This document shows positions 44,306 through 57,757 of a stretch of 64,000 nucleotides of DNA, one piece after another. A program made the translations under genes and the position numbers. Location: contig CAJFCJ010000006.1 in the NCBI GenBank assembly GCA_904063045.1, positions 2,222,946 to 2,286,945 of the forward strand, given 5' to 3'. Each line of letters begins with the position of its first letter. Within the stretch, counting starts at the first letter, position 1. The stretch is from Dimorphilus gyrociliatus (taxonomy: Eukaryota > Animalia > Annelida). The notes below the pieces were generated by a model that was not told the DNA's origin, made no database searches, and saw only the letters and a list, made by a program, of their open reading frames with translations.

Positions 44306-47300
44306 ATGCTTTGGAAGGCGTGTGCTCTGCTGTTTTTCGTTGCATCAATTGGCTCTTCTTTTGGTGATCGTAACAATATTACAGCAGCTAAAATATGGCT
44401 TGAAGAATATAATACAGAGGCTGAAAAAGTACGTCCCGAAGCTCAAGAAGCATCTTGGACATGGAATACTAATATAACAGACTATAACAATCGCCTAAAA
44501 GTAAGTTAATATTTTCATATAAATCATATTTCTTAAATTTTTTTCAATATTATTTCAATCTTTTCTCCCTTCACACAAAGTATGATGTTAACCATCAAAT
44601 ATCTTTGTTAATCTTTTAAAAACCTTAACGAAAGAGGAGATTATCGAGAGTTTATATAACTTTTGAGTGGATTAAAAGAAAAGTTAAGCACTTAATTCAT
44701 TTTCTCCTCAACTAAAAGAAGCTGTTTTATTGTGTAATGTACAAAATGGGCTGTAATCAATATACTAAGATTTTGATAAGATACTGCAAATTTCAAGTGT
44801 TTATGAGCAAATTGTTTGATGAGAAAATTTATTATTTCTAACAATGTTTCTATTGTTTTTCAAGAGGATGAAAGATGTTTACTCTCTCATCTTTTAATTT
44901 CTGATCTATTTAGAAACAAAACGTTAGTTTTCCACTAAAAAAACATTAAAAAGCTTTTTCTCGTATCAATTTGTTATAATGTTCGATATACAAAAAGTAT
45001 AAAATATATACAAAACACATATATGCTATTGTCCATGTGCCAAGAAACAGCAGATAGAAAGGTCGACTGATAACTATGTATAATATAGTCTTGAGATATA
45101 ATATTCTATTTAATTACCTTTTCCAGCTACCTGTTACTAATAAAATACATTCTGCTATCTTTTATTAGAGAGTTACGCCTATTGAGTATCTGTTTAGATA
45201 AGACAAAATGTCTGTAAAGTATAGATTATAACTTAAGAATGTAAATTAGAATAAAGTTTAACATTTTATTTTATCGCTAATTTTCATGTTTTAAGATTAA
45301 ACTCTATTATCTAGTGTACGTCTTGATAAATATGTATTTATAACGTATTTAGCATATAAAATAACCTTACTGCAAATGAATAAACAATGGATAAAATATC
45401 AAATTGAAGTTTTATTACTATTATTTTCTTTAATTTCAATAGTCAAATTAAATTATTTATACAATATTATAATTATTATTAAATGTCAAGTAATTTATTG
45501 TATTTATAACCCAATTAATTGTAACTTCAATATGTCGCTTTGCTTTTATTATATAAGTATATTTTAGCTATTAAGTTTATCTTTAAAAATGTTCATTAGT
45601 TGGAAGCTGAAAAGAAGAAATCTGAATTCGATAAACGCTCTTATAATCAAACTTTGAATTGGGATTGGAAAAATTTTACCGAGATCAATGCTAAAAGACA
45701 ATTCTATAAGATTGCCGATATTGGAGAATCGGTTCTACCGACAGATAAATTTCAACAGATCACTAAAGCAAAATCCAATATGCAAAGCGTATACTCAAAG
45801 GCTAGAGTTTGTAATAAACCTGGAGATCAGGATCCATCCAAATGTTACCCATTAAATCCAACTTTGGAGAATATTATGGCCAAGTCAACTGATTGGAAGG
45901 AGCTAGCTTGGGCTTGGGAGGGATGGAGAAATGAAACTGGAAGGAAAATGCCCGATGATTATGAAAAATTTGTTGAACTAGCAAACGAAGCTGCCGGTAT
46001 GAATGGCTACACAGATAATGGAGACTATTGGAGAAGTTGGTACGAAACCGAAAACTTTGAAAAACAAATGGAGGAGCTATTTATCGGTTTGAAAGACTTG
46101 TATAAACTACTACATGCTTATGCAAGAAAAAAGCTAAAGGAAAGATTTGTTGGTCATCCATTTCCCGATAGTGGTCAAATTCCAGCCCATCTCTTAGGAA
46201 ATATGTGGGCTCAGAGTTGGGGAAATTTGTTCACACTTTTAGCTCCCTATCCCGGAAAACCTTTAGATGTAACTGAAATGATGAGGGAACAGGTTCTTTT
46301 CAATTCTTTCTATCACCTATTCAATCTTTACATACTAAATTTTCTCTCTTAGAACTATACTACAAGAAAAATGTTCGATTTGTCTGAAAAATTCTTTACC
46401 GATCTCGGTTTGGACCCTATGCCACCCAAATTCTATAATGACTCTATGTTGGATAAGCCAGAAGACGGTAGAGACGTTGTATGCCACGCATCGGCATGGG
46501 ATTTTTACAACCGAAAAGACTTCCGGTATGAAATTTTTTAACTTGAATTTCTTGTTAAACATAACATCTTCAAGTATGGAATTTTTTATATGTTTTCTTT
46601 TTATTTCTAATTTTAAAAGTATTAAACAATGTACTCAAGTGACAATGGATTGGTTGATAACAACGCATCACGAAATGGGTCATGTTCAATACTTTTTGCA
46701 ATACAAAGATCAACCAGTGGTTTTTAGAAGGGGTGCCAATCCAGGTTCGTTTAATAGTAACAAACAAACAAAAAGCAAATAGAGTTTTTTATATATTAAT
46801 AGTATTTTTTTTATTTTGTTTATTTAATCTTCTTTAAACTTGAATTGGCGTCTCTAGTTGATAAATATTTTGTTTACGATTTTCTCACATTTACTCAGGA
46901 ATACTGAGTGACAACTTCATTTAAAATTATCATACAGAATCAAACAATGTACTCGAATAACTATGGATTGGTTGATTACAACACACCATGAAATGGGTCA
47001 TGTACAATACTACTTACAATACAAAGATCAACCAGTAGTATTTAGAAGGGGTGCCAATCCAGGTTAAAGAAGTTTAAATTCGCAATAACTTCATATCTGA
47101 ATTAATATTTCCCACAATTTGCTTATATTTTTATAATGTTTTAATATAGGTTTCCATGAAGCTATTGGAGATGTTCTTGCTCTGTCTGTATCTACACCTA
47201 AGCATTTAAAAAAAATTAATTTACTCAGGCCAAATCAAAATCCAGATGATGAAGGTTTAAAATATTTTATAATGATGATAATTTAATTAGTGAAATATTT

Positions 47301-48350
47301 TTTTTATGTATTTGTTTTTTATCTTAGAACTACAATTAAACTTCCTTATGAATCAAGCTTTGAAAAAAATTGCTTTTATTCCCTTTGGCTATCTTATTGA
47401 CCAATGGCGTTGGAAAGTATTTAAAGGAGAAACTAAGAAAGATGAATACAACGAAGACTGGTGGAATTTAAGATGCAAACATCAAGGTGTCTCCCCACCC
47501 GTCCAAAGATTTAACACAGATTTTGACGCTGGTTCTAAATTTCATGTTCCAAACAATACACCTTACATCAGGTAATAAATATATTTTCTACTATAAAAAA
47601 AAGACATGAAAGTACAGTTCCGATGATTGTTTTTTCCAGATATTTCGTAAGTTACGTCATCCAGTTCCAATTCCACAAAGCTCTTTGTAAGGAAGCAGGA
47701 CACAACGGCCCATTACACAAATGCGATATTGATCAATCCACAGAAGCCGGCAACAAGCTTGCGTAAATTTTAAATTACACTTAATTATGGTATGCATATT
47801 TCCTAACTCTAATAAATCCAATAGAGCTATGATGAAATTAGGATCATCCAAAGAATGGCCTGACGCAATGGAAGCAATAACAGGTATATAACACAAAGAT
47901 AATTAATCTTTTAATATCGTATATTCATTGAAAATTGAACAACAGGTCAAAGAAAGATGAATGTCAGCGATCTTATAGAATACTTTGCACCATTGGAAGA
48001 TTGGCTTAAGAAAGAAGTTAAAAATGAAACACTTGGCTGGGATGATCAGTGTGGAAGGGTTAGTATTATTACTTACTAATACATATAAATACAGATTTAC
48101 ATGCATATAAATATATAAATTGTTATAGAATTTTACCATCCCCACTCCCCCTCCAGTAAGATAAATTTAATACTTTAGCAATTTACCATTTCTTATATTC
48201 AACAAAAATTTTCAGACTTCACCTCCAACTACACCAACACCAACACCCCAATCGTCTACAGTTAAACCTACTAGTGGTTTTGATAGTATCCATAATAATA
48301 AAACTTTTATTGGTATCTTTATAGCAATTCTTGCTATTTTTGTGCGATAA
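44306..48350 (+). CDS. ACE: Angiotensin-converting enzyme (peptidase M2), single catalytic domain, with duplicated active-site exon and a GPI-signal-like C-terminus
   Basis: Signal peptide, [49 protein letters not shown] and YIRYFVS..QFQF. A Pro/Thr stalk precedes a short hydrophobic end. Confidence 0.97.
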
Positions 48351-48706
48351 ATACACACTTGCGTTTAAGCATAGTCACTATCTCTCTGTCTCTTGTAACT
48401 CAAAGCTGAGCATTTTTGCTACATAAATTCCTTTTATATATCTTATCTCTCTCTCTCTGTTTGCTTAATAATTGCAGATATTTTAATAGTTACAAAGTAC
48501 TCTAATGATACATATTGTTTGTCAACAATAACTACTTCTATGTTTATTTTAGTTTTCTGATTTCTGAATAAAAGATTTAGATGGATGTATTAACTTAAAC
48601 AGTAAATAAACTTTAAAAGATACTAATACATCATGTTTCATATGTTACTATTATTTTTATTTACAAATAAATAGAGAATTTCTAATTGAATATGTAATTT
48701 AATTGA

Positions 48707-49468
48707 TTATTTCACTTTAACTGGAATCTTTGAACGATTTAACCAATTTCTTTTCAGATTTGGGGTAATGGAATGCGGACAAAATCCATATTTATAGCTA
48801 TTTATATCATTTTTCATTGAATTAGATTTAATCGATTTTTCAATGACTTGACCATTATTTTCTGGATATTTCAATTCTTTTGTATCTGTGCTAAATGTAA
48901 AAGTTACATCAACACTTTCGTCATCTCCTTCTGTATGACTTCCTGAGACTTCTGATTTTGATTTCATTGTCGTTTTAAACAAGTTCACTTTATTTTTTCG
49001 ATTACCGGATATTGTCTTTGTTTTAGTGTTTGACCTTTTGACCGAGTTTATCGCTCCATCAACGTCAGTTACAGATTCTAAAATTGATATTGGGATGCCT
49101 TTTATTTTTGACGATAGGGTTCTAGCTGTATTCATTACAGTTGGACTACAACTTCTTCGTCTTGGGGGTGATACTAAAGATTTCTTAAGCCTATTAGAAG
49201 GAGCTTGAATTGAAAATGATGCAGCTTTTACAGATTTTGATCTTTTCATTGGAGTTCTTTTCAAACTTTTGACTGTTCTTAAATATTCGTTTGCCTCTAA
49301 TCTGACAGACTCCATCTCTTTCCAAATGTTTTTATTCTCTTCGTCTATTTGTTTATATTTGCCTTGGTAAACTAAAAATAACTTTTCGATTTCATTGAAT
49401 GAATTTTTTATATTCTCCAAATTTTTACTGACATCTTCTTCAATTAAATATTTTTGGAATTCCACCAT
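48707..49468 (-). CDS. Uncharacterised single-exon protein (N-terminal coiled coil, S/K/R-rich disordered region, C-terminal SxIP)
   Basis: 253-codon ATG-initiated ORF in AT-rich DNA, far longer than expected by chance; no family recognised. Confidence 0.7.
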   Translation of the reverse strand: MVEFQKYLIEEDVSKNLENIKNSFNEIEKLFLVYQGKYKQIDEENKNIWKEMESVRLEANEYLRTVKSLKRTPMKRSKSVKAASFSIQAPSNRLKKSLVSPPRRRSCSPTVMNTARTLSSKIKGIPISILESVTDVDGAINSVKRSNTKTKTISGNRKNKVNLFKTTMKSKSEVSGSHTEGDDESVDVTFTFSTDTKELKYPENNGQVIEKSIKSNSMKNDINSYKYGFCPHSITPNLKRNWLNRSKIPVKVK

Positions 49469-49976
49469 TTTTTTATGTTTTCCTTTCTTTCCTTTCAGAT
49501 TTTTTAAATTTTTAAATCACAATCAAATTAAACTATTTAATTTAAAGGTCATTTTTTCCATTCAGTGCTGAGATTATTCAATTTATTATTGTAATTTGAG
49601 AAGAATAGTCAAGTTATTTGTAGTAAATAATGATCTCTTTGATATTTATTATTCAAAATTCAATAGTTTTCTTTCTCTACAACAAACAAATATTTATATC
49701 ACTTATATTCTTGTAGGAGGACACTTATACACATTAGTTAAGAAAGTTTTAAACAATACAACCATGCTATTCCAACGCGGCTGAAGAAAATTTAACAAGT
49801 ACCCGGCTATTATATTACGAAAAAGACGTTTAATGGAAATTGGTGCGAAACTTATTTTGACAGTAAGTTTATTTTGAATCGTAAATACCGAAAATGTATA
49901 TATTCCTCGATGAATCTTTAATAAAGTTACGTTTAATTGTTTTTACTTTCAGACAGGGTACCATTTTAAGATAGAG

Positions 49977-50997
49977 ATGTCTCAGAATCAATCTTTATGC
50001 CATGATTATAACTGCGTTCATTATCATATAACTGATCCGATTCCATCAGCAATTTTGTCAAGAGAAGAACTAAACGTATTTTATATTTTATTCCATAAAA
50101 TACAAACAGCTCTGAGGCGAGAAAAAAAAGACACCTTCAAACAACCTTTTCCTCCTGACTTTCCTTCTTTAAGTGTCGGATCGAAGAGAAAAGTAAAGAG
50201 TCTCCAATCTTCAAAAGAAGAAAGTGTAAAAAGCATCAGAGAATTACCTCTGGATTCCGTCAGATCAAGAAAGAGAATATGCGAAGAGGCTGAAAGAGGT
50301 GTTTATTGACATTTTTGAAAGTTATTCAAATGTTTTAAGTCAAAGAAAATTTTCTTCTTTTTTATAACTCAGATCGAAGCTCAACGCCAATCACAATTTA
50401 CAATAAAGGAATGCTACTGGATAGACCGAAAGAGGAAAAGATTCAGAACGTATTAAAGAATGAGAGTGAGAATTCAGAAGAGGACATCGATGACATTATT
50501 GAAATGAATGACTGGTCATTAGTGGAAGTACCAGAAGAACAGTCGTTAGCGATCTGCGGTATTAGCAGGTTATTATTGCAGTAAGATCGCTTTTTTATAG
50601 CAAATAGTTTATTATTAATCTTTCTTAGGAATCGAAAAGGATATGAACAATCACGAACTGTTATAAGAAGACGATCCTCGAGAATTGTCCAATGTCTTGG
50701 AAACTCATCAATTTATCTAGTAGGGAGAATAAATGAGGAAGCAGTTTCGAAATACGGTTGGTTTATTTTTTAAAAAGAGGCTATAAATCAGTGTATTGAA
50801 GACCTTTCAATATTATAAACTTAGACTTCTCTCAAGAAATGATAGCAGCTTTTAAAAATGGATTTCCTCCTGACTGGAAACAATACGTTAAATATCACTA
50901 TAAGCAAAAGACTATAAGAGATCGAATAGAGCAGCCAATAAGCTACAATGTGAGAGACAATTTGAATGACAAGGTTCTTCGTAGACCATTGTACTAG
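49977..50997 (+). CDS. SANTA-domain protein, paralog 1; exons 49977-50298, 50373-50568, 50629-50756, 50825-50997 (in-frame upstream ATG at 49833 possible)
   Basis: Spliced C-terminus MNDWSLVE...AICG...IRRRSSRIVQCLGNSSIYLVGRIN...DFSQEMIAAFKNGFPPDWK fits the SANTA pattern (W..EG..S..ER..Y.L.G..GFP.NW) of KNL2/M18BP1. Confidence 0.75.
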
Positions 50998-51366
50998 TAG
51001 TAGATTGATTATTAGGAGAAGTTGGTGAATTTCGTCTAACTTTCACACTGCTTGGGCTATTTTTTGATTCCTTTTCTAATTAAAAGTATCTAATCGAATA
51101 CTTTCAATTAATTTTGTTTATAATTAACCAGGCTTATAAAACAACAGTATTAAATTTTTGTTTAATAACTATGTCATTGATTAACGTAGATATAACAATT
51201 GTTAAAAAATGTTAATAAAATATTTTGGTTTGTCTTTTCTAAAGTGAGAGTATTTCAAATTCAACGATAGTCTAAAAAAGATTATTTTAATTAGATAATT
51301 TATAATAACATTTATTGGTTCTTACCGTTATAATATGAAACGTTTTGATAAATATTTTAAGGCTGT

Positions 51367-52446
51367 ATGAAAACATTTCAGAGTTTTGAAAATGACTCGG
51401 CGACATTAGGTCTTGGTTGCAATTCGAAAAACTGCTTCCATATTCATATGAAGGACAATTACCTGATAGAAGTGTTATCGACAGAAGAAATAAAAATTTT
51501 CACAATGCTTGTTCAAAAGATTCAAACATTCAACGAAACAAGGTTTATAAAATTTGGCATTTGTAAAGATGAAGTTAGAAGCGTCCTCTCCAGAGACAGT
51601 TTCGATAGACAATCCTCAAGACAGAACATGAACTGTGCTAGAACAGTAAAAATTGAAGATAGCAAGTCAGAGACTGATTTCTCAGACTCAGAGGGAATAG
51701 GTAAAAAATATTTGGTGATTAATTGAGTAATTTGAAATAGTTATTTGTAAAATAGATGGGAGAAGAAAACCTGAAAAATTTGCTGTAAACAGTAAGATTA
51801 AATTGATTGTTTTGTCGGCCTCTAAAAAAATTCTATGTGTAATTACTAACATTTCTATCAATTTTGTAGATCAGAGAAGAAATCCTTCAAAATTTGTTGG
51901 AAATAATCCTCTCCTCGAAGACCTAGAAAGCAAAGAATTGAATGAATCAATAGAATATGAAATGGATGAAATTTGTGAACCAAAGTTAGGCGATTTTAAA
52001 CAATTATTCAACTGGTCACTTGTTGAAAATAAAACCGAAACTGGAATATTTTATATTGGAATAGAAGGGTTCATTAAGTATATTTTTTCTTGAATTAGTC
52101 TAGCTCTTATATTTAATAGCTGTTGTTTTTCAGCGACAGTAAAAATGATATATATAAGTCAGATGAAGTTGTAGAACGCTGTAAATCAAATTTAGTAGAA
52201 TGTCGTGACGGCTTGTTATTTTATCTTGTTGGACAATTAAATATTACTGTTACTCTCCAAAATGGTAACTTTCTTACATCTGTATTGACTTGATGTCTAA
52301 AAATATAAAAAAATTCCTTAATTTTAGGATTTTCAAAAAAAGTTATCGATCAGTTTAGAAATGGTTTCCCAGAAAACTGGAAAGATCTCCTTCAACAGCA
52401 TCTTAGAAGAAGGAAAATGAAAAGACCAAGTTTATTTACAAAATGA
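51367..52446 (+). CDS. SANTA-domain protein, paralog 2; exons 51367-51700, 51756-51791, 51870-52077, 52134-52264, 52328-52446
   Basis: LFNWSLVE...IGIEGFINDSKNDIYKSDEVVERCKSNLVECRDGLLFYLVGQLN...GFSKKVIDQFRNGFPENWKDLL closely follows the remembered human M18BP1 SANTA domain (FGFPENWK). Confidence 0.8.
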
Positions 52447-52763
52447 AAGTTTATTCAAAAAATTCTTGAAACGTTGTCCGAATTTTCATTCTCTATTAAT
52501 AATTGTATACTTTTCTGTTTTATTTAAGTTACTTTTATAAAAAAAATACTACATATAGTTTTTTAAATACAGTCTTTTAGAATTATTCTAATTCGAACAT
52601 ACTCACCTTGTAAACCGGAAGTCACTACTAAAATGATTTAGGCATACCCTTTATTTTGAAAAGCAGGCGCCATTTATCTGGTCCACTCTAAAAAATAAGA
52701 ATTATTTTTCCTCCTCAGAGGAATTCTTAATATTTTACCGAAAATAATATAAAGGATATTAGA

Positions 52764-53888
52764 ATGCCAATCCATCGAAGATTGTGTGAGCCTATGAATT
52801 GTGTTCATTTTCATATATCGGATCCGGTTCCTTCTGAGCTCTTGACCAAAGAAGAACTAAATGTTTTTATGACTCTATTTCATAAAATCCAGTACGCTCT
52901 TGAGAAAGAAGAAAGAGAGGAAGGTGGTGAAGTTTTTAAGAAGCCAGTGAACCAAGCTAGTACCAAGCCAGTGAAGAGAAAGTACAGAAGCTCTACTCAT
53001 GATGATAGCAGCTGCGAAGACGATATTAACTATGTAAAGCCAAAGAAAAAACTCTATGAACGAGATTTTAGACCTCGAAAGAATTCAGGTAAGGTTCTCT
53101 TATACTTTTGTTGATGAGACGAAAATGAAATGCCAACAGATGACAGGAGTTCATCGGTTACGGCCAATTTTTTTGAAAGTGGAATGATTTTGGATAATTA
53201 TTCAAGAGAGGATAATTGTAAAGACGGTATATAACCCGTTGAAGTTAATTTTACAATCTTATATTAATTATCAACTCTTACTTTTTCAGAAGAGTCATCT
53301 TCAACCGCCACCTTTTTTGAAAATGGAATGCTTTTAGATGAAAACCAAAGGAAATCTGTTGAAAAAGCTGACAGTAAAGATTCATCAGATTTATTTTATT
53401 TCATTGAGTTTTCGAATTGGTCTTTGATGGAACTTCCCGGTTCACCTGCGATATTAGTTGACGGCTATATAAAGTAAATCTATCGTTTGTGTAAATAAAT
53501 AATATTAATGAATTATCATTTTAGCGGAAATAAAGGAATGTTGGAAAAATCGTATCCTGTTGTAAAAAGGCATTCTAACAACTTTATAGAATGTTCAGAT
53601 GGATCCTTCTTTCGGCTAAACGGTGAAATGAACGCCGAAGAAGCAATAAAATCTGGTTTGTTATCAAATAATATCTTTAGGAGGAATATACATTTCGAAC
53701 TGGTTTTAGGTTTCTCGAAAGACTTAGTGGATGCATTCCTACATGGCTTTCCACCAAATTGGAAAAAGTTTATTAAGGATCATTTTAGAAGGAAAAAGGC
53801 AAAGCATAAGGAATACCAACAATCTTTGCCATATGAAGTAAAAAGGAGCCAGCGAAGACCATCCTACTGTAGAAACGATCTAACTTAA
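52764..53888 (+). CDS. SANTA-domain protein, paralog 3; exons 52764-53088, 53140-53226, 53290-53473, 53525-53655, 53710-53888
   Basis: FSNWSLME...ILVDGYING...EKSYPVVKRHSNNFIECSDGSFFRLNGEMN...GFSKDLVDAFLHGFPPNWKKFI; intron positions and phases match paralogs 1 and 2. Confidence 0.8.
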
Positions 53889-55063
53889 CTATTCTGAAAC
53901 ATATTATCATTCAACTTCATACTACTTTTGTCTTTTTATAATCTGTACTATCTTGTGTTTAAATCTTCGTTCAACACATGGAAAAGTGACGTGCAGATAT
54001 TATAACAGAAAAGTTATTGAAAAAATTGGCTTTATGAAATATTAATGTTCATTCCGGCCTGATGACTTGTTTTCACTAAATGATTTCAGACGTAGCTGAG
54101 TAATTGACAATGTTAATTAATAGTTAAATTTAAACAAAGTATCTAAAAAAATTTTGTACATTATCCTTAATTGATTAATATGCATGAGGCTAGCAATCAG
54201 ATATACGTAAGCCAAAAGACTCATTTTCAAAGAGAAGAACGGATTTGTGACTAGATCGAATTATCAATAATTGAAAAGGATAAGAGGAGAGAAAAGAACC
54301 TTTTGTAATTGATATTTATTGATTTCTCTTACGAATAGCATAAACGTATTTTTGTTTTTTAGTTAAGTGAAATTGTAAAAATTTTGCATGAGGTTAGGTT
54401 TTGTTTTCAAAAATGACATAGATGTTTTAATGACTCTTCTGGAAAGCTGATATGTTCAAAAGAGAAATAAACAAGTGGCAAAGTTAAATATAGGGAATAT
54501 GAAAATATTTCCATTAAGTATCCGAAAATTGTGTTTTTCAATGTGGCAAATATGTAGGTCATGTTGTGAATGAAAATTCCATAAGCAGTATATATCTATT
54601 AAATTGAAAGGATATAAATAGAGAAACTTTCAAGTAGGTAGAGGCTTCGGTTAATGTTTATCTGATCGTTAACTTAAAGTATTATGGTTGGTTGTAGTCG
54701 AGCAATTCGAACAAAAAGAAAACAATTTAATTTATCAATCATTTCATAAAATAAATTAAAATTCTTGTATTTCATAACTCAATAAACTTTTCAACACAAG
54801 TGCAATTACAGGCATTGAAAGATTGTTTATAAATATATATTAGAAGTCTACCCAAAAAGTAGTATTATTACGCCTCCTATAAAAATCACTTGGGTTATCG
54901 CAAATTACAGTGAAACTCTTATCTTCGTAAGTTTTTCTCTTTGGTAATAAGTTCTTTTTTCTACGTCTTTTGTTTTGAGAGAACTTTGATTGGGTCTCAG
55001 TCTCCTTAAAGTAAAACTGAAGTCGTGAGAAACTAGTATCTATTGGGTGTGTTATTTATAGCT

Positions 55064-57757
55064 TTAAAATCGGAATGGTGGTAATTGTTTGGACTTCAGT
55101 TGTACTTTAAAGTCATTTTTTAGTCTTCGATTATTCATCAGCGATTTTGACACAATTTCAACACTTGTTTTATGCTTAGGAATCATAGAGGGTTCACTTC
55201 TAACATGCAAAAGTGTTCTTGGGGGAACTGGGGTTGTTTTGGTAGGAGCACTATGGGAATTAGAGGTATTTCTGTTAACAGTCCGAACTGGTCCCAAATT
55301 AATGCTGTTTCTTTTCAAGGGTCCTCCAAATTTTCTTGCCGGAAGAGGTAATCCTCTTGAAGCCCTAATCGATCTTCTAAGAATTTCTCGTAAAGCATGA
55401 ATATCAGCGTACCCAATCCTAGGCCATGGATTACTATTTTCAATGTCAAGCGCTGACACAGCAAGAGCTCGGCCAACTTCTTCATAGTGAGTTGGAGTAT
55501 ATTTCGGAGGAAAAGATGCTGGAGGAGGTGGAGTAGCACGGCCATCGTCACCCTTTGCAGGAGGAACAGCATTTAAACCTTTACCAGAATTGTAGTTGCA
55601 CTCTAGTGTATAGCTGTGAGTAATTCCGAAAGTCTTCCAGATAGAAACTCTACCTGAACCTTCTTTTGACAGCCCGTCTCTCTTATCTCTGGTATACATA
55701 TTTTTCTCAGTAAAGTTACAGGCACTAAAATCGAAGTGAGCACTGTTGACTGCCATTAGCTTGGCATAAAGAATGTTTTTTACCTGTGTATGAAAGAATA
55801 AAAATTAATGAAAAGGTAGATGAAACTTGGACAAAATTACTTGTTCTTCTTCATCCGGCAAGTTATTTCCATATAGAAAACACCCTCTTTTAGAAGCGTG
55901 TCCATGTAAGTCAATATAAAAGGCAATTCCTGAGATTTTCTTCTCCATATCGTTATTAATTTTTCCAGTATTAATGAATAATGACCCTCCTTGATTATTA
56001 TCTTTATTATGCGAATTAATATGTTCTAAAACTCCCGAAGTACTATGTTTGTCTATCGTTAAATTTGAATGAGTATCATTAAGAACAGGAAGAGTGGTTT
56101 GCCTCTCTATAGAAGCGATAGAATTAGTTTTGCTAAATAATAACTTAGATCGGTCTAATGCTACATTTTCTTGATCAGATTTTTGTGAGCCGGAAGAAGA
56201 GCTCAAATCCTGGAGAGCAGTAGAAAAATCTTTATTTTCACACGTGGAAAGCTGATTGTCGGGTGAATTGGCATCATGATGAAAACGGATAACGGCTTTA
56301 GCAGCATAAATAGTTGGTTGGAGACTAAAATCAGGTTGAAGGTAATATCTATTTAAATTTGCTCCCCTTGAATCCGTTCTATAATGCCCCATTTTGACTC
56401 CATCAGGATTAAGTATAGGTATTAACTTGAAAACGTATTTCCTGCGCAATTGTTTGGCTCTTTCGTCGTTTTGTCGAAGTATGAGATCTAAGAAGCCGTT
56501 GAACACAAAGCTGGATGGTGTTTCACCAGGATGAACTCTGGAGCTCACAAAAAACACCCTTTTCTTTTCAAATTTCCTCGGCCTCTTCTTCGCTCCATCA
56601 GGAAAAAGATGTTCGTCAAAGACTGGTTCTAACTCTGAATGTATGCCTTCATAATCAGATATAGTTAAGAGGTCAACTCGTAGACCATCAATTGATCTAC
56701 AAATATACATAAAAAAGATAATGTACTTTGAATGGAACTCTCAATAAATTTGTTGTAAATTACCTGCACAATAATTCACGGTGATAGTAAATTTCGTTAT
56801 CTTCACGAAAGCGATCGTCCAACGATTCCAGCATTTCTTGACACTCCAAATAAGAGAAAGGATAGCAAAAAGCAAAGTAAACTGTTGGTGCAGTATTAAG
56901 AAAGCGATGGGTAAAAGTTAATCTAAAGTCATTATCAACACTCTGCCAAGTTGGACGATCCCTGATTCTTTCCCATTTTTTACCAGATTTGACTAGAGGA
57001 GCATGTCCTTGAGCGAACAATTTCCCTTGTTTATTCAAATTCATTATAGTTATTTTAATAACTTTAAGCATAGTTCCTCCCCTAACTCCAAAATGAAACC
57101 AAGATCTATATAATAATGGGTAATTATGACAAAATAGCAATAAATCATAAAAAAGGATTTTTTAAATAAATTTATAACATTGATATAATTAAGAGAGTCT
57201 TATATATAGATATAAGCACTTAAGAGCATTTATTAAGTCTTTGAATTAGTTTTTGATAGGTTTGTTTACTTTAAGTTTTCTTTTGTGCTAGTTCGTATGC
57301 ATACAAAAGGGGCGAGAGGGAAAGAAATTATCAGTAGGCATACACGTGCTAAATGCCCTGTCACTAAAATAGATTAGCAAACCAATCAATCTTAATACAA
57401 ATCTATATTTAACAGAACCTAATGAAATGGACTGGATCTTAAGATTATATGCTAGGCCAACCTGTTTCCATTTTCATATTCTGTCCCCCCACAGTCAGGT
57501 TTTGTCCATACTTGATACTCATAGTCGGCTTTGACCTCTATACTATTCGTAGCTAAAAAATATATACAATTTGTATGAAGAGATTTGAGTAGAATCGCAA
57601 AATAGCATGATTTTAATGAATCTTTTTATGAAATGTATTCAATGATATAAAATTTACCTTCGCTTTCTTCATCGCGGAGCACTTTTTCAACTCTGGCTAG
57701 ATTAGCCGAATCAAAATTTGCCAAAAATGTCAATCCACCACAGCGAAATTCAGTCAT
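55064..57757 (-). CDS. AGBL5: Cytosolic carboxypeptidase 5 (tubulin deglutamylase; multi-exon)
   Basis: [74 protein letters not shown] and [11 protein letters not shown]. Confidence 0.95.

Follow-up and report, generated by a model that had tools for sequence, protein, structure and literature searches.

Two expressed SANTA genes, one of them encoding two SANTA modules, in the annelid Dimorphilus gyrociliatus: a possible family of shortened M18BP1/KNL2 proteins

INTRODUCTION

Reports of the SANTA domain have so far been confined to M18BP1/KNL2 (PMC12953894; PMC9210943), and most metazoan genomes contain a single SANTA gene (PMC9210943). The present work describes a tandem array of SANTA-encoding exons in the annelid Dimorphilus gyrociliatus, which possesses a single cenH3 (PMC12153100). 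In human M18BP1, SANTA is the only indispensable centromere-targeting element, so that targeting is lost upon its removal, and its ligand is unknown; Trp413-His414 are required for centromere recruitment, and Glu420, Arg421, Ser431, and Lys468 are located on the same conserved surface (PMC12953894). Artificial dimerization of M18BP1 bypasses Mis18alpha/beta, and this human work from 2026 argues that the divalency of M18BP1 is the key licensing step (PMC12953894). The plant paralogs alphaKNL2 and betaKNL2 carry SANTA only and interact; each of them acts at centromeres (PMC13294675). In the literature examined, Xenopus laevis is the only metazoan named as having two SANTA genes, M18BP1.S and M18BP1.L (PMC9210943).

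The analyzed stretch (the window) comprises 64,000 nucleotides (nt) of contig CAJFCJ010000006.1 of assembly GCA_904063045.1 (positions 2,222,946 to 2,286,945 of the forward strand; offset to locus L008, 46763). It is AT-rich (approximately 31% G+C), and its introns are short (50–75 nt). The SANTA-encoding part holds two expressed genes, not three. Gene A (49833 or 49977 to 52446; 545 or 527 amino acids, aa) encodes two modules and originates from two tandem copies that now share one spliced reading frame. Gene B (52764 to 53888) encodes a single-module protein of 272 aa, which reaches 301 aa when a cassette exon is included, and has its own conserved promoter. A third gene with the fourth module, DgyrCDS401 (P0007, 269 aa), is unlinked (scaffold CAJFCJ010000001.1, 934-nt gene). 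The genes are already publicly annotated as unnamed 'DgyrCDS' products, and no paper was found in the literature that deals with these genes, with M18BP1 of annelids, or with proteins carrying SANTA in tandem.

Like metazoan M18BP1/KNL-2, for which the SANTA domain of human M18BP1 as solved by crystallography (PDB chain 9R6H) served as reference, the worm proteins carry SANTA, as indicated by Pfam and the sequence match to 9R6H, contain disordered regions with basic stretches and short motifs before it, retain equivalents of Arg421 and Lys468, and occur in a host with cenH3. In contrast to these proteins, they comprise 270–545 aa instead of about 900–1100 aa, show no detectable SANT/Myb and no recognizable Mis18-binding N-terminus, have lost the Trp413-His414 pair in three of the four modules, and have gained an orphan Cys/His-plus-helix module. 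Instead of one gene with one SANTA domain, the worm has three genes with four SANTA domains, two of which are located in one protein. With plant alphaKNL2/betaKNL2, the worm family shares SANTA without SANT/Myb and the repeated duplication into paralogs; betaKNL2, which has no CENPC-k motif, associates with itself and with alphaKNL2 and still functions at centromeres, a precedent for cooperating SANTA paralogs. Plant KNL2 differs in its N-terminal SANTA, its greater length, and the absence of the Cys/His N-terminal module and of tandem SANTA domains, and its duplications occurred independently in another kingdom. The two X. laevis genes resemble the worm family as a metazoan case of two SANTA genes, but they are near-identical, derived from allotetraploidy, and of full architecture, whereas the worm paralogs are old, minimal, and only 28–51% identical.

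RESULTS AND DISCUSSION

SANTA domains and module architecture

A four-exon unit is repeated three times on the + strand (49977-50997, 51367/51382-52446, and 52764-53888; Table 1). In all three units, intron 2 is a phase-2 and intron 3 a phase-1 intron at identical protein positions, as derived from exon arithmetic and the GT..AG joints seen in RNA, and the units share 30–40% identity in alignments. Both the common intron phases and the high divergence had been part of an original prediction, made from the letters of the window alone, and were borne out. The exon calls behind that prediction were incomplete, lacking both the mini-exon of gene A (36 nt, 51756-51791) and the cassette exon of gene B (87 nt, 53140-53226).

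The domain at the end of each unit, for which a SANTA-like character had been proposed, was confirmed as SANTA by sequence comparison. The pattern W..G..R..C..G..L.G..(G/D)FS..F..GFP.(N/D)WK is present in all three units. The full product of unit 3 (P0001) matched the Pfam model PF09133 (length 92, gathering cut-off 21 bits) with 56.8 bits (E 3.1e-15, model positions 2-91/92), P0006 also reached 56.8 bits, and DgyrCDS401 reached 56.7 bits. P0001 and P0006 are the D. gyrociliatus products DgyrCDS4724 and DgyrCDS4723, and both equal the translation of gene B. For gene A, statements on the full product rest on exon-wise results, RNA joints, and a precomputed annotation table, in which the 545-aa product carries PF09133. 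Exon by exon, unit 2 gave 19.8 bits (model 33-71) and 22.9 bits (model 73-91) and unit 3 gave 19.1 and 16.8 bits, both in collinear order, whereas in unit 1 only the last exon matched (18.8 bits). The signature motifs of SANTA are VxLxDW at the N-terminal end and GFx7FxxGFPxxW at the C-terminal end (Zhang et al., 2006, as quoted in PMC9210943); the corresponding patterns (I/F)x(E/Q)(M/L/F)xxWSL and (G/D/Y)F(S/T)x6FxxGFPxxW were found in 8/8 modules, that is, the four modules of D. gyrociliatus and of a relative introduced below. Furthermore, 9R6H was matched at E 3e-6 (P0001) and 1.7e-5. When individual SANTA exons or a three-row profile of them were searched against the PDB, no match was obtained.

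Structure prediction was less informative. It used a cleaned alignment, as piece-wise MAFFT alignments had misplaced several exon pieces. The full-length AF2 model was poor (mean pLDDT 57), with six strands (pLDDT <50) followed by helices at 207-212, 217-224, and 231-252; the fold of 9R6H, with which it was compared, consists of two small beta-sheets and then three helices, the third of which is long. The top Foldseek match of the model was 9R6H, but it was weak (E 4e-3, root-mean-square deviation 10.9).

Every module contains, in this order, a C-x4-C-x-H-x-H stretch with a long helix, a basic patch resembling a nuclear localization signal, an FFxxGMxLD motif, and SANTA. The basic patch reads YVKPKKKL in gene B, IDYIKPKKKM in DgyrCDS401, and VRSRKRI in module 1, and the motif preceding SANTA occurs in variants such as FFENGMLLD, IYNKGMLLD, and FFEQGMVLE. 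In the N-terminal module, the Cys/His stretch is usually followed by DP(I/V)PS and then by a helix of the pattern EE(L/I)(N/K)(V/I)F..L(F/V).KI. C8, C13, H15, and H17 as well as the helix residues L27, E30, E31, F35, L38, K41, and I42 are invariant in 8/8 modules. The AF2 model of this part displayed a helix at 29-58 (pLDDT 87-89) and an N-terminal hairpin of low confidence (pLDDT 52-66). Pfam found no match in the N-terminal exons, a Foldseek search of the model remained without match, and residues 1-60 yielded nothing usable in an Atlas feature search. A profile of the N-terminal exons searched against 1.84 billion proteins recovered five matches, P0001 and four fragments of Logan origin (for three, the assemblies were traced to one diverged relative), and we therefore regard the N-terminal module as an orphan.

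Even with E values up to 1-10 allowed, Pfam gave no SANT/Myb match for the exon pieces or for the proteins P0001, P0006, and P0007, which agrees with the earlier failure to see a SANT domain by eye; RNA revealed no further exons downstream that could hold one. A CENP-C-like motif was looked for by eye, without a profile, and only a loose RRPSY/RRPLY/KRPSL tail was found in the three units of the window, which is not retained in the relative or in DgyrCDS401. The short length noted originally was likewise upheld, with 270–545 aa compared to about 900–1100 aa in the usual M18BP1. The triplicated small-gene architecture was not: there is one gene with two SANTA domains, one with a single SANTA domain, and a further, unlinked member.

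Conservation in a diverged relative

The syntenic locus of a diverged species (L005) was available from Logan assemblies of several SRR233722xx runs. Between the two species, silent sites are saturated (pS 0.6–1.0), indicating a deep split. Comparing the four modules in both species, orthologs are 62–86% and paralogs 28–51% identical; therefore, all duplications and the fusion within gene A predate the split. DgyrCDS401 is the ortholog of P0004 (locus L001) of the relative. Judged by the intact ortholog pairs across this saturated divergence, all four modules are under purifying constraint. The rate of amino-acid change (dN) was 0.29 and 0.28 in the two halves of gene A, 0.13 in gene B, and 0.02–0.16 in four neighboring genes, so gene A evolves fast yet is clearly maintained. 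Centromere-drive-type selection, which the original prediction had suggested, could not be shown: the ratio dN/dS was attempted between the only two species at hand and is not estimable because of the saturated silent sites, and no positive selection is claimed.

Two differences in intron content were observed among the family members. In module 2 of the relative, the phase-1 intron within SANTA is lost, and exons 3 and 4 are fused (L005 2568-2810). The unlinked member has no first (phase-1) intron in the relative (L001 6188-6709), and the 934-nt size of the gene in D. gyrociliatus (L007 6001-6934) implies the same.

Predicted role at the centromere

The residues of the human SANTA surface were mapped via the alignment of P0001 with 9R6H and a gap-free paralog alignment, the latter alone being used for modules 1 and 2. 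All modules retain equivalents of Arg421 and Lys468, Glu420 is kept in module 2 only, and Ser431 is not kept. Module 2 retains the surface in kind at four of six residues as counted here, namely an aromatic-basic pair (YK/FK) at Trp413-His414, Glu420, Arg421, and Lys468. The YK/FK pair and Glu420 mark the second half of gene A as the most canonical module.

Since M18BP1/KNL2 is the only family reported to carry SANTA, we propose with moderate confidence that the genes form a dinophilid family of minimal, drastically shortened M18BP1/KNL2 descendants with a predicted role at the centromere. SANTA and the short linear motifs that precede it would dock on centromeric chromatin, and the invariant Cys/His-plus-helix module would bind zinc and mediate self-association, cross-association, or partner binding. 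The two-module protein of gene A would represent a built-in dimer, whose single chain would be divalent by itself, a state that human M18BP1 reaches only through dimerization on Mis18alpha/beta.

Several points weigh against this proposal. The gene structures are solid; the centromere function is predicted from sequence, and zinc binding and oligomerization of the N-terminal module are guesses. Neither SANT/Myb nor a CENP-C-like motif recognizable by eye nor a Mis18-binding region was found. Modules 1, 3, and 4 have EQ, EK, and IR/VQ, respectively, in place of Trp413-His414, which leaves the aromatic-basic pair to module 2. Rare isoforms consisting of a single unit would not appear in assembled RNA contigs. 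Finally, a canonical long M18BP1 may be encoded elsewhere, in which case the family would consist of extra paralogs with an unassigned role. Homologue searches, for which P0001 and the SANTA portion of P0006 served as queries, recovered the two gene B isoforms and no other protein; due to the length window of the search (proteins >476 aa fell outside) and its word filter, this blank is uninformative about long M18BP1 proteins.

The last point leads to the main rival, which we consider somewhat unlikely: a normal long M18BP1/KNL2 would exist elsewhere in the genome, and the short lineage-specific paralogs would use the SANTA fold for another chromatin or peptide target. Such a non-centromeric job would fit the loss of the Trp-His pair, needed for human targeting, in three of four modules, the addition of an N-terminal module without any relative among 1.84 billion proteins, and the amino-acid change in gene A, which is faster than in its neighbors (dN 0.28 compared to 0.02–0.16). 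It is at odds with the restriction of SANTA, as far as reported, to M18BP1/KNL2, with the presence of Arg421 and Lys468 in all modules, and with module 2, which has most surface residues in kind. Plant KNL2 also counts against it, as this protein functions at centromeres although it has no SANT and is not known to have a conservation of the Trp-His type.

A more far-reaching version of the centromeric reading appears doubtful to us. According to it, dinophilids would have replaced the long M18BP1 and its Mis18-driven dimerization with a minimal SANTA set including a single-chain "dimer," a zinc-binding N-terminal module would link the paralogs into multivalent centromere readers, and splicing of duplicated mini-exons would tune the number of FFxxGMxLD docking motifs. 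In any case, the worm, with its cenH3 and very small genome, offers SANTA proteins of approximately 270 aa, a natural chain with two SANTA domains, and paralogs that differ at the surface pair critical in human. If the proteins are centromeric, they would provide a minimal natural system to find the ligand of SANTA and to test whether valency alone suffices; otherwise, SANTA proteins serving a different purpose would be known for the first time.

Transcription and structure of gene A

Two public runs (X1 and X2) were compared with positions 49700-54200 as assembled contigs. The contigs of X2 are spliced, which identifies this run as RNA; the RNA results are based on X2 and, for gene B, additionally on the low-depth run X1.

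A single X2 contig (1768 nt, depth 115) contains all unit 1 exons, the joint from 50949 to 51382, and unit 2 up to 52596. The joint leaves unit 1 at AAT|GTGAGA, 15 codons before its stop, and resumes 15 nt beyond the "ATG" of unit 2, with TTTCAG as the acceptor. According to exon arithmetic, both parts are joined in frame. The public annotation lists a single 545-aa SANTA product, which corresponds to 49833 to 52446 in the window and equals 527 aa (257 + 270) plus 18 aa. In the relative, the donor AAT|GTGAGA and the acceptor TTTCAG are retained in frame. Because of the in-frame RNA joint, the 545-aa annotation, and the conserved splice sites, units 1 and 2 were assigned to one gene. A merge of two transcripts during assembly was ruled out as the origin of the contig, since the join is a splice that is not present in the genome. 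Of the three same-strand genes initially described, the three repeats and their orientation thus remain, and three separate genes do not. The question raised along with them, whether the three units might be exons of one transcript or unexpressed, is answered differently for the two genes: units 1 and 2 belong to one transcript, gene B is separate, and all are expressed. Pseudogenes or unexpressed DNA were ruled out by the spliced RNA and the intact reading frames in two species.

It is very unlikely that units 1 and 2 are two genes whose read-through, conjoined RNA is a side product, with the proteins of approximately 270 aa as the working forms. The in-frame stop of unit 1 only 15 codons past the donor (50995), the ATG at 51367 in D. 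gyrociliatus, and the loss of rare variants from contigs would be compatible with this. However, X2 has zero RNA depth within 50950-51381, and the annotation matches the fused form. The ATG at 51367 sits within the acceptor tract of the 432-nt intron and is absent in the relative, which has no start codon ahead of the Cys/His motif of module 2. A comparison of both species revealed no conserved promoter-like island in the 432-nt interval, unlike the regions upstream of genes A and B. Three independent small tandem SANTA genes, as originally pictured from the near-identical exon layouts with start-like and stop codons, are highly improbable and already contradicted by all of this evidence as well as by the annotation, whose 545 aa agree exactly with the spliced form.

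At the 5' end of gene A, the conserved non-coding block ...CTATTATA.TACGAAAAAGACGTTTA...TTGGTGCGAA...GTAAGTTTATTTTGAAT (49803..49880) is also present in the relative. A loose end of an RNA contig, TATTTTGACA, connects 49862 to 49953. The relative reads ATA in place of the ATG at 49833; the annotated 18-aa N-terminal extension is therefore doubtful, and 49977 was taken as the conserved start of gene A.

The mini-exon at 51756-51791 duplicates the start of the next exon (GRRKPEKFAVN compared to QRRNPSKFVGNN), is of equal length in the relative, and is required to reach the annotated total of 545 aa.

Two further observations concern gene A. The string CATTGTACTA in the 432-nt intron (50989-50998; L005 approximately 1424-1433) is conserved in both species, although just one of the two has it as coding sequence (the context of the unit 1 stop); a function in splicing or regulation is possible. 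A low-depth X1 contig (depth 2.4; 51730-51985) skips 51783-51850, a segment with CT..AC ends between the mini-exon and its duplicate in the next exon, which could be explained by a template-switch artefact between the repeats, by an allele with a deletion of 68 nt, or by an intron on the antisense strand.

Transcription and structure of gene B

Gene B is separated from gene A by an RNA-free gap of 57 nt (52597-52653) and by the promoter island at 52613..52690, the only block conserved between the stop of gene A and the start of gene B in two species with saturated silent sites; on these grounds, it was treated as a gene of its own. Cell-cycle promoter motifs (CHR TTTGAA, an E2F-like site, and an ETS site) were found upstream of gene B only, among all family members, and were therefore taken solely as a sign of a separate conserved promoter.

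The cassette exon (53140-53226) is both included (depth 155.6) and skipped (depth 60.7) in X2 and included in X1, corresponding to the annotated products of 301 aa and 272 aa. It is kept at equal length in the relative, with 79% amino-acid identity.

TABLE 1 Positions of the repeated units and of the features of genes A and B in the window
Feature	Position	Strand	Remarks
Unit 1 exons as repeat	49977-50298, 50373-50568, 50629-50756, 50825-50997	+	
Unit 2 exons as repeat	51367/51382-51700, 51870-52077, 52134-52264, 52328-52446	+	
Unit 3 exons as repeat	52764-53088, 53290-53473, 53525-53655, 53710-53888	+	
Gene A, first, mostly untranslated exon in conserved non-coding island	49803..49880	+	Annotated ATG 49833; exon end 49862; donor GT 49863
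Gene A, exon with start ATG 49977 and N-terminal module 1	49953..50298	+	C-x4-C-x-H-x-H codons 49998-50027; helix EELNVFYILFHKIQ; basic linker; RNA joint 50298/50373
Gene A, exon with pre-SANTA motif IYNKGMLLD and start of SANTA 1 (NDWSLVE...)	50373..50568	+	Closes at phase-2 intron
Gene A, exon with middle of SANTA 1	50629..50756	+	Closes at phase-1 intron
Gene A, exon with end of SANTA 1 (FSQEMIAAFKNGFPPDWK)	50825..50949	+	Donor AAT|GTGAGA before stop 50995-50997; PF09133 18.8 bits, model 73-92
Gene A, 432-nt intron linking unit 1 to unit 2	50950..51381	+	GT..AG; contains unused unit 1 stop and spurious ATG 51367
Gene A, exon with N-terminal-type module 2	51382..51700	+	C-x4-C-x-H-x-H codons 51418-51447; helix EEIKIFTMLVQKIQ
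Gene A, 36-nt mini-exon	51756..51791	+	RNA joints 51700/51756 and 51791/51870
Gene A, exon with linker and start of SANTA 2 (FNWSLVEN...)	51870..52077	+	Closes at phase-2 intron
Gene A, exon with middle of SANTA 2	52134..52264	+	PF09133 19.8 bits, model 33-71; Tyr-Lys and Glu-Arg at human Trp413-His414 and Glu420-Arg421
Gene A, last exon with end of SANTA 2 (FSKKVIDQFRNGFPENWK)	52328..52596	+	PF09133 22.9 bits; stop 52444-52446; 3' untranslated region (UTR) to approximately 52596 (end of RNA contig)
Gene B, conserved promoter island	52613..52690	+	ACCGGAAGT ... TTTGAAAA(G)CAGGCGCCATTT; RNA begins at approximately 52654
Gene B, exon 1 with N-terminal module 3 and basic patch YVKPKKKL	52764..53088	+	Cys/His codons 52785-52814; RNA joints
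Gene B, 87-nt cassette exon with second FFExGMxLD copy (FFESGMILD)	53140..53226	+	RNA inclusion and skipping
Gene B, exon with FFENGMLLD and start of SANTA 3	53290..53473	+	
Gene B, exon with middle of SANTA 3	53525..53655	+	PF09133 19.1 bits as piece; 91% identical to relative
Gene B, last exon with end of SANTA 3 and basic tail (...KRSQRRPSYCRNDLT)	53710..53888	+	PF09133 16.8 bits as piece; stop 53886-53888

Neighboring genes and sample origin

Upstream of gene A, a Peptidase_M2 (ACE) gene is located at 46764-48820, and a Ser/Lys-rich open reading frame of 253 aa (48707-49468, − strand), an annotated gene without Pfam family, is orientated head to head with gene A. On the other side, the 3' RNA contig of gene B (53709-54200 and on to approximately 55000) continues beyond 54200 for about 800 nt and enters the 3' end of a convergent Peptidase_M14 gene (approximately 54840-57757, − strand), and the 3' UTRs of both genes appear to abut or overlap. 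The joining of gene B with the peptidase gene in this contig was attributed to an assembly merge, unlike the spliced contig of units 1 and 2. Run X1 is a metatranscriptome labeled 'coral metagenome'; its contigs are at least 99% identical to the worm genes and spliced like gene B, and the sampled coral or aquarium apparently harbors D. gyrociliatus or a strain very close to it.

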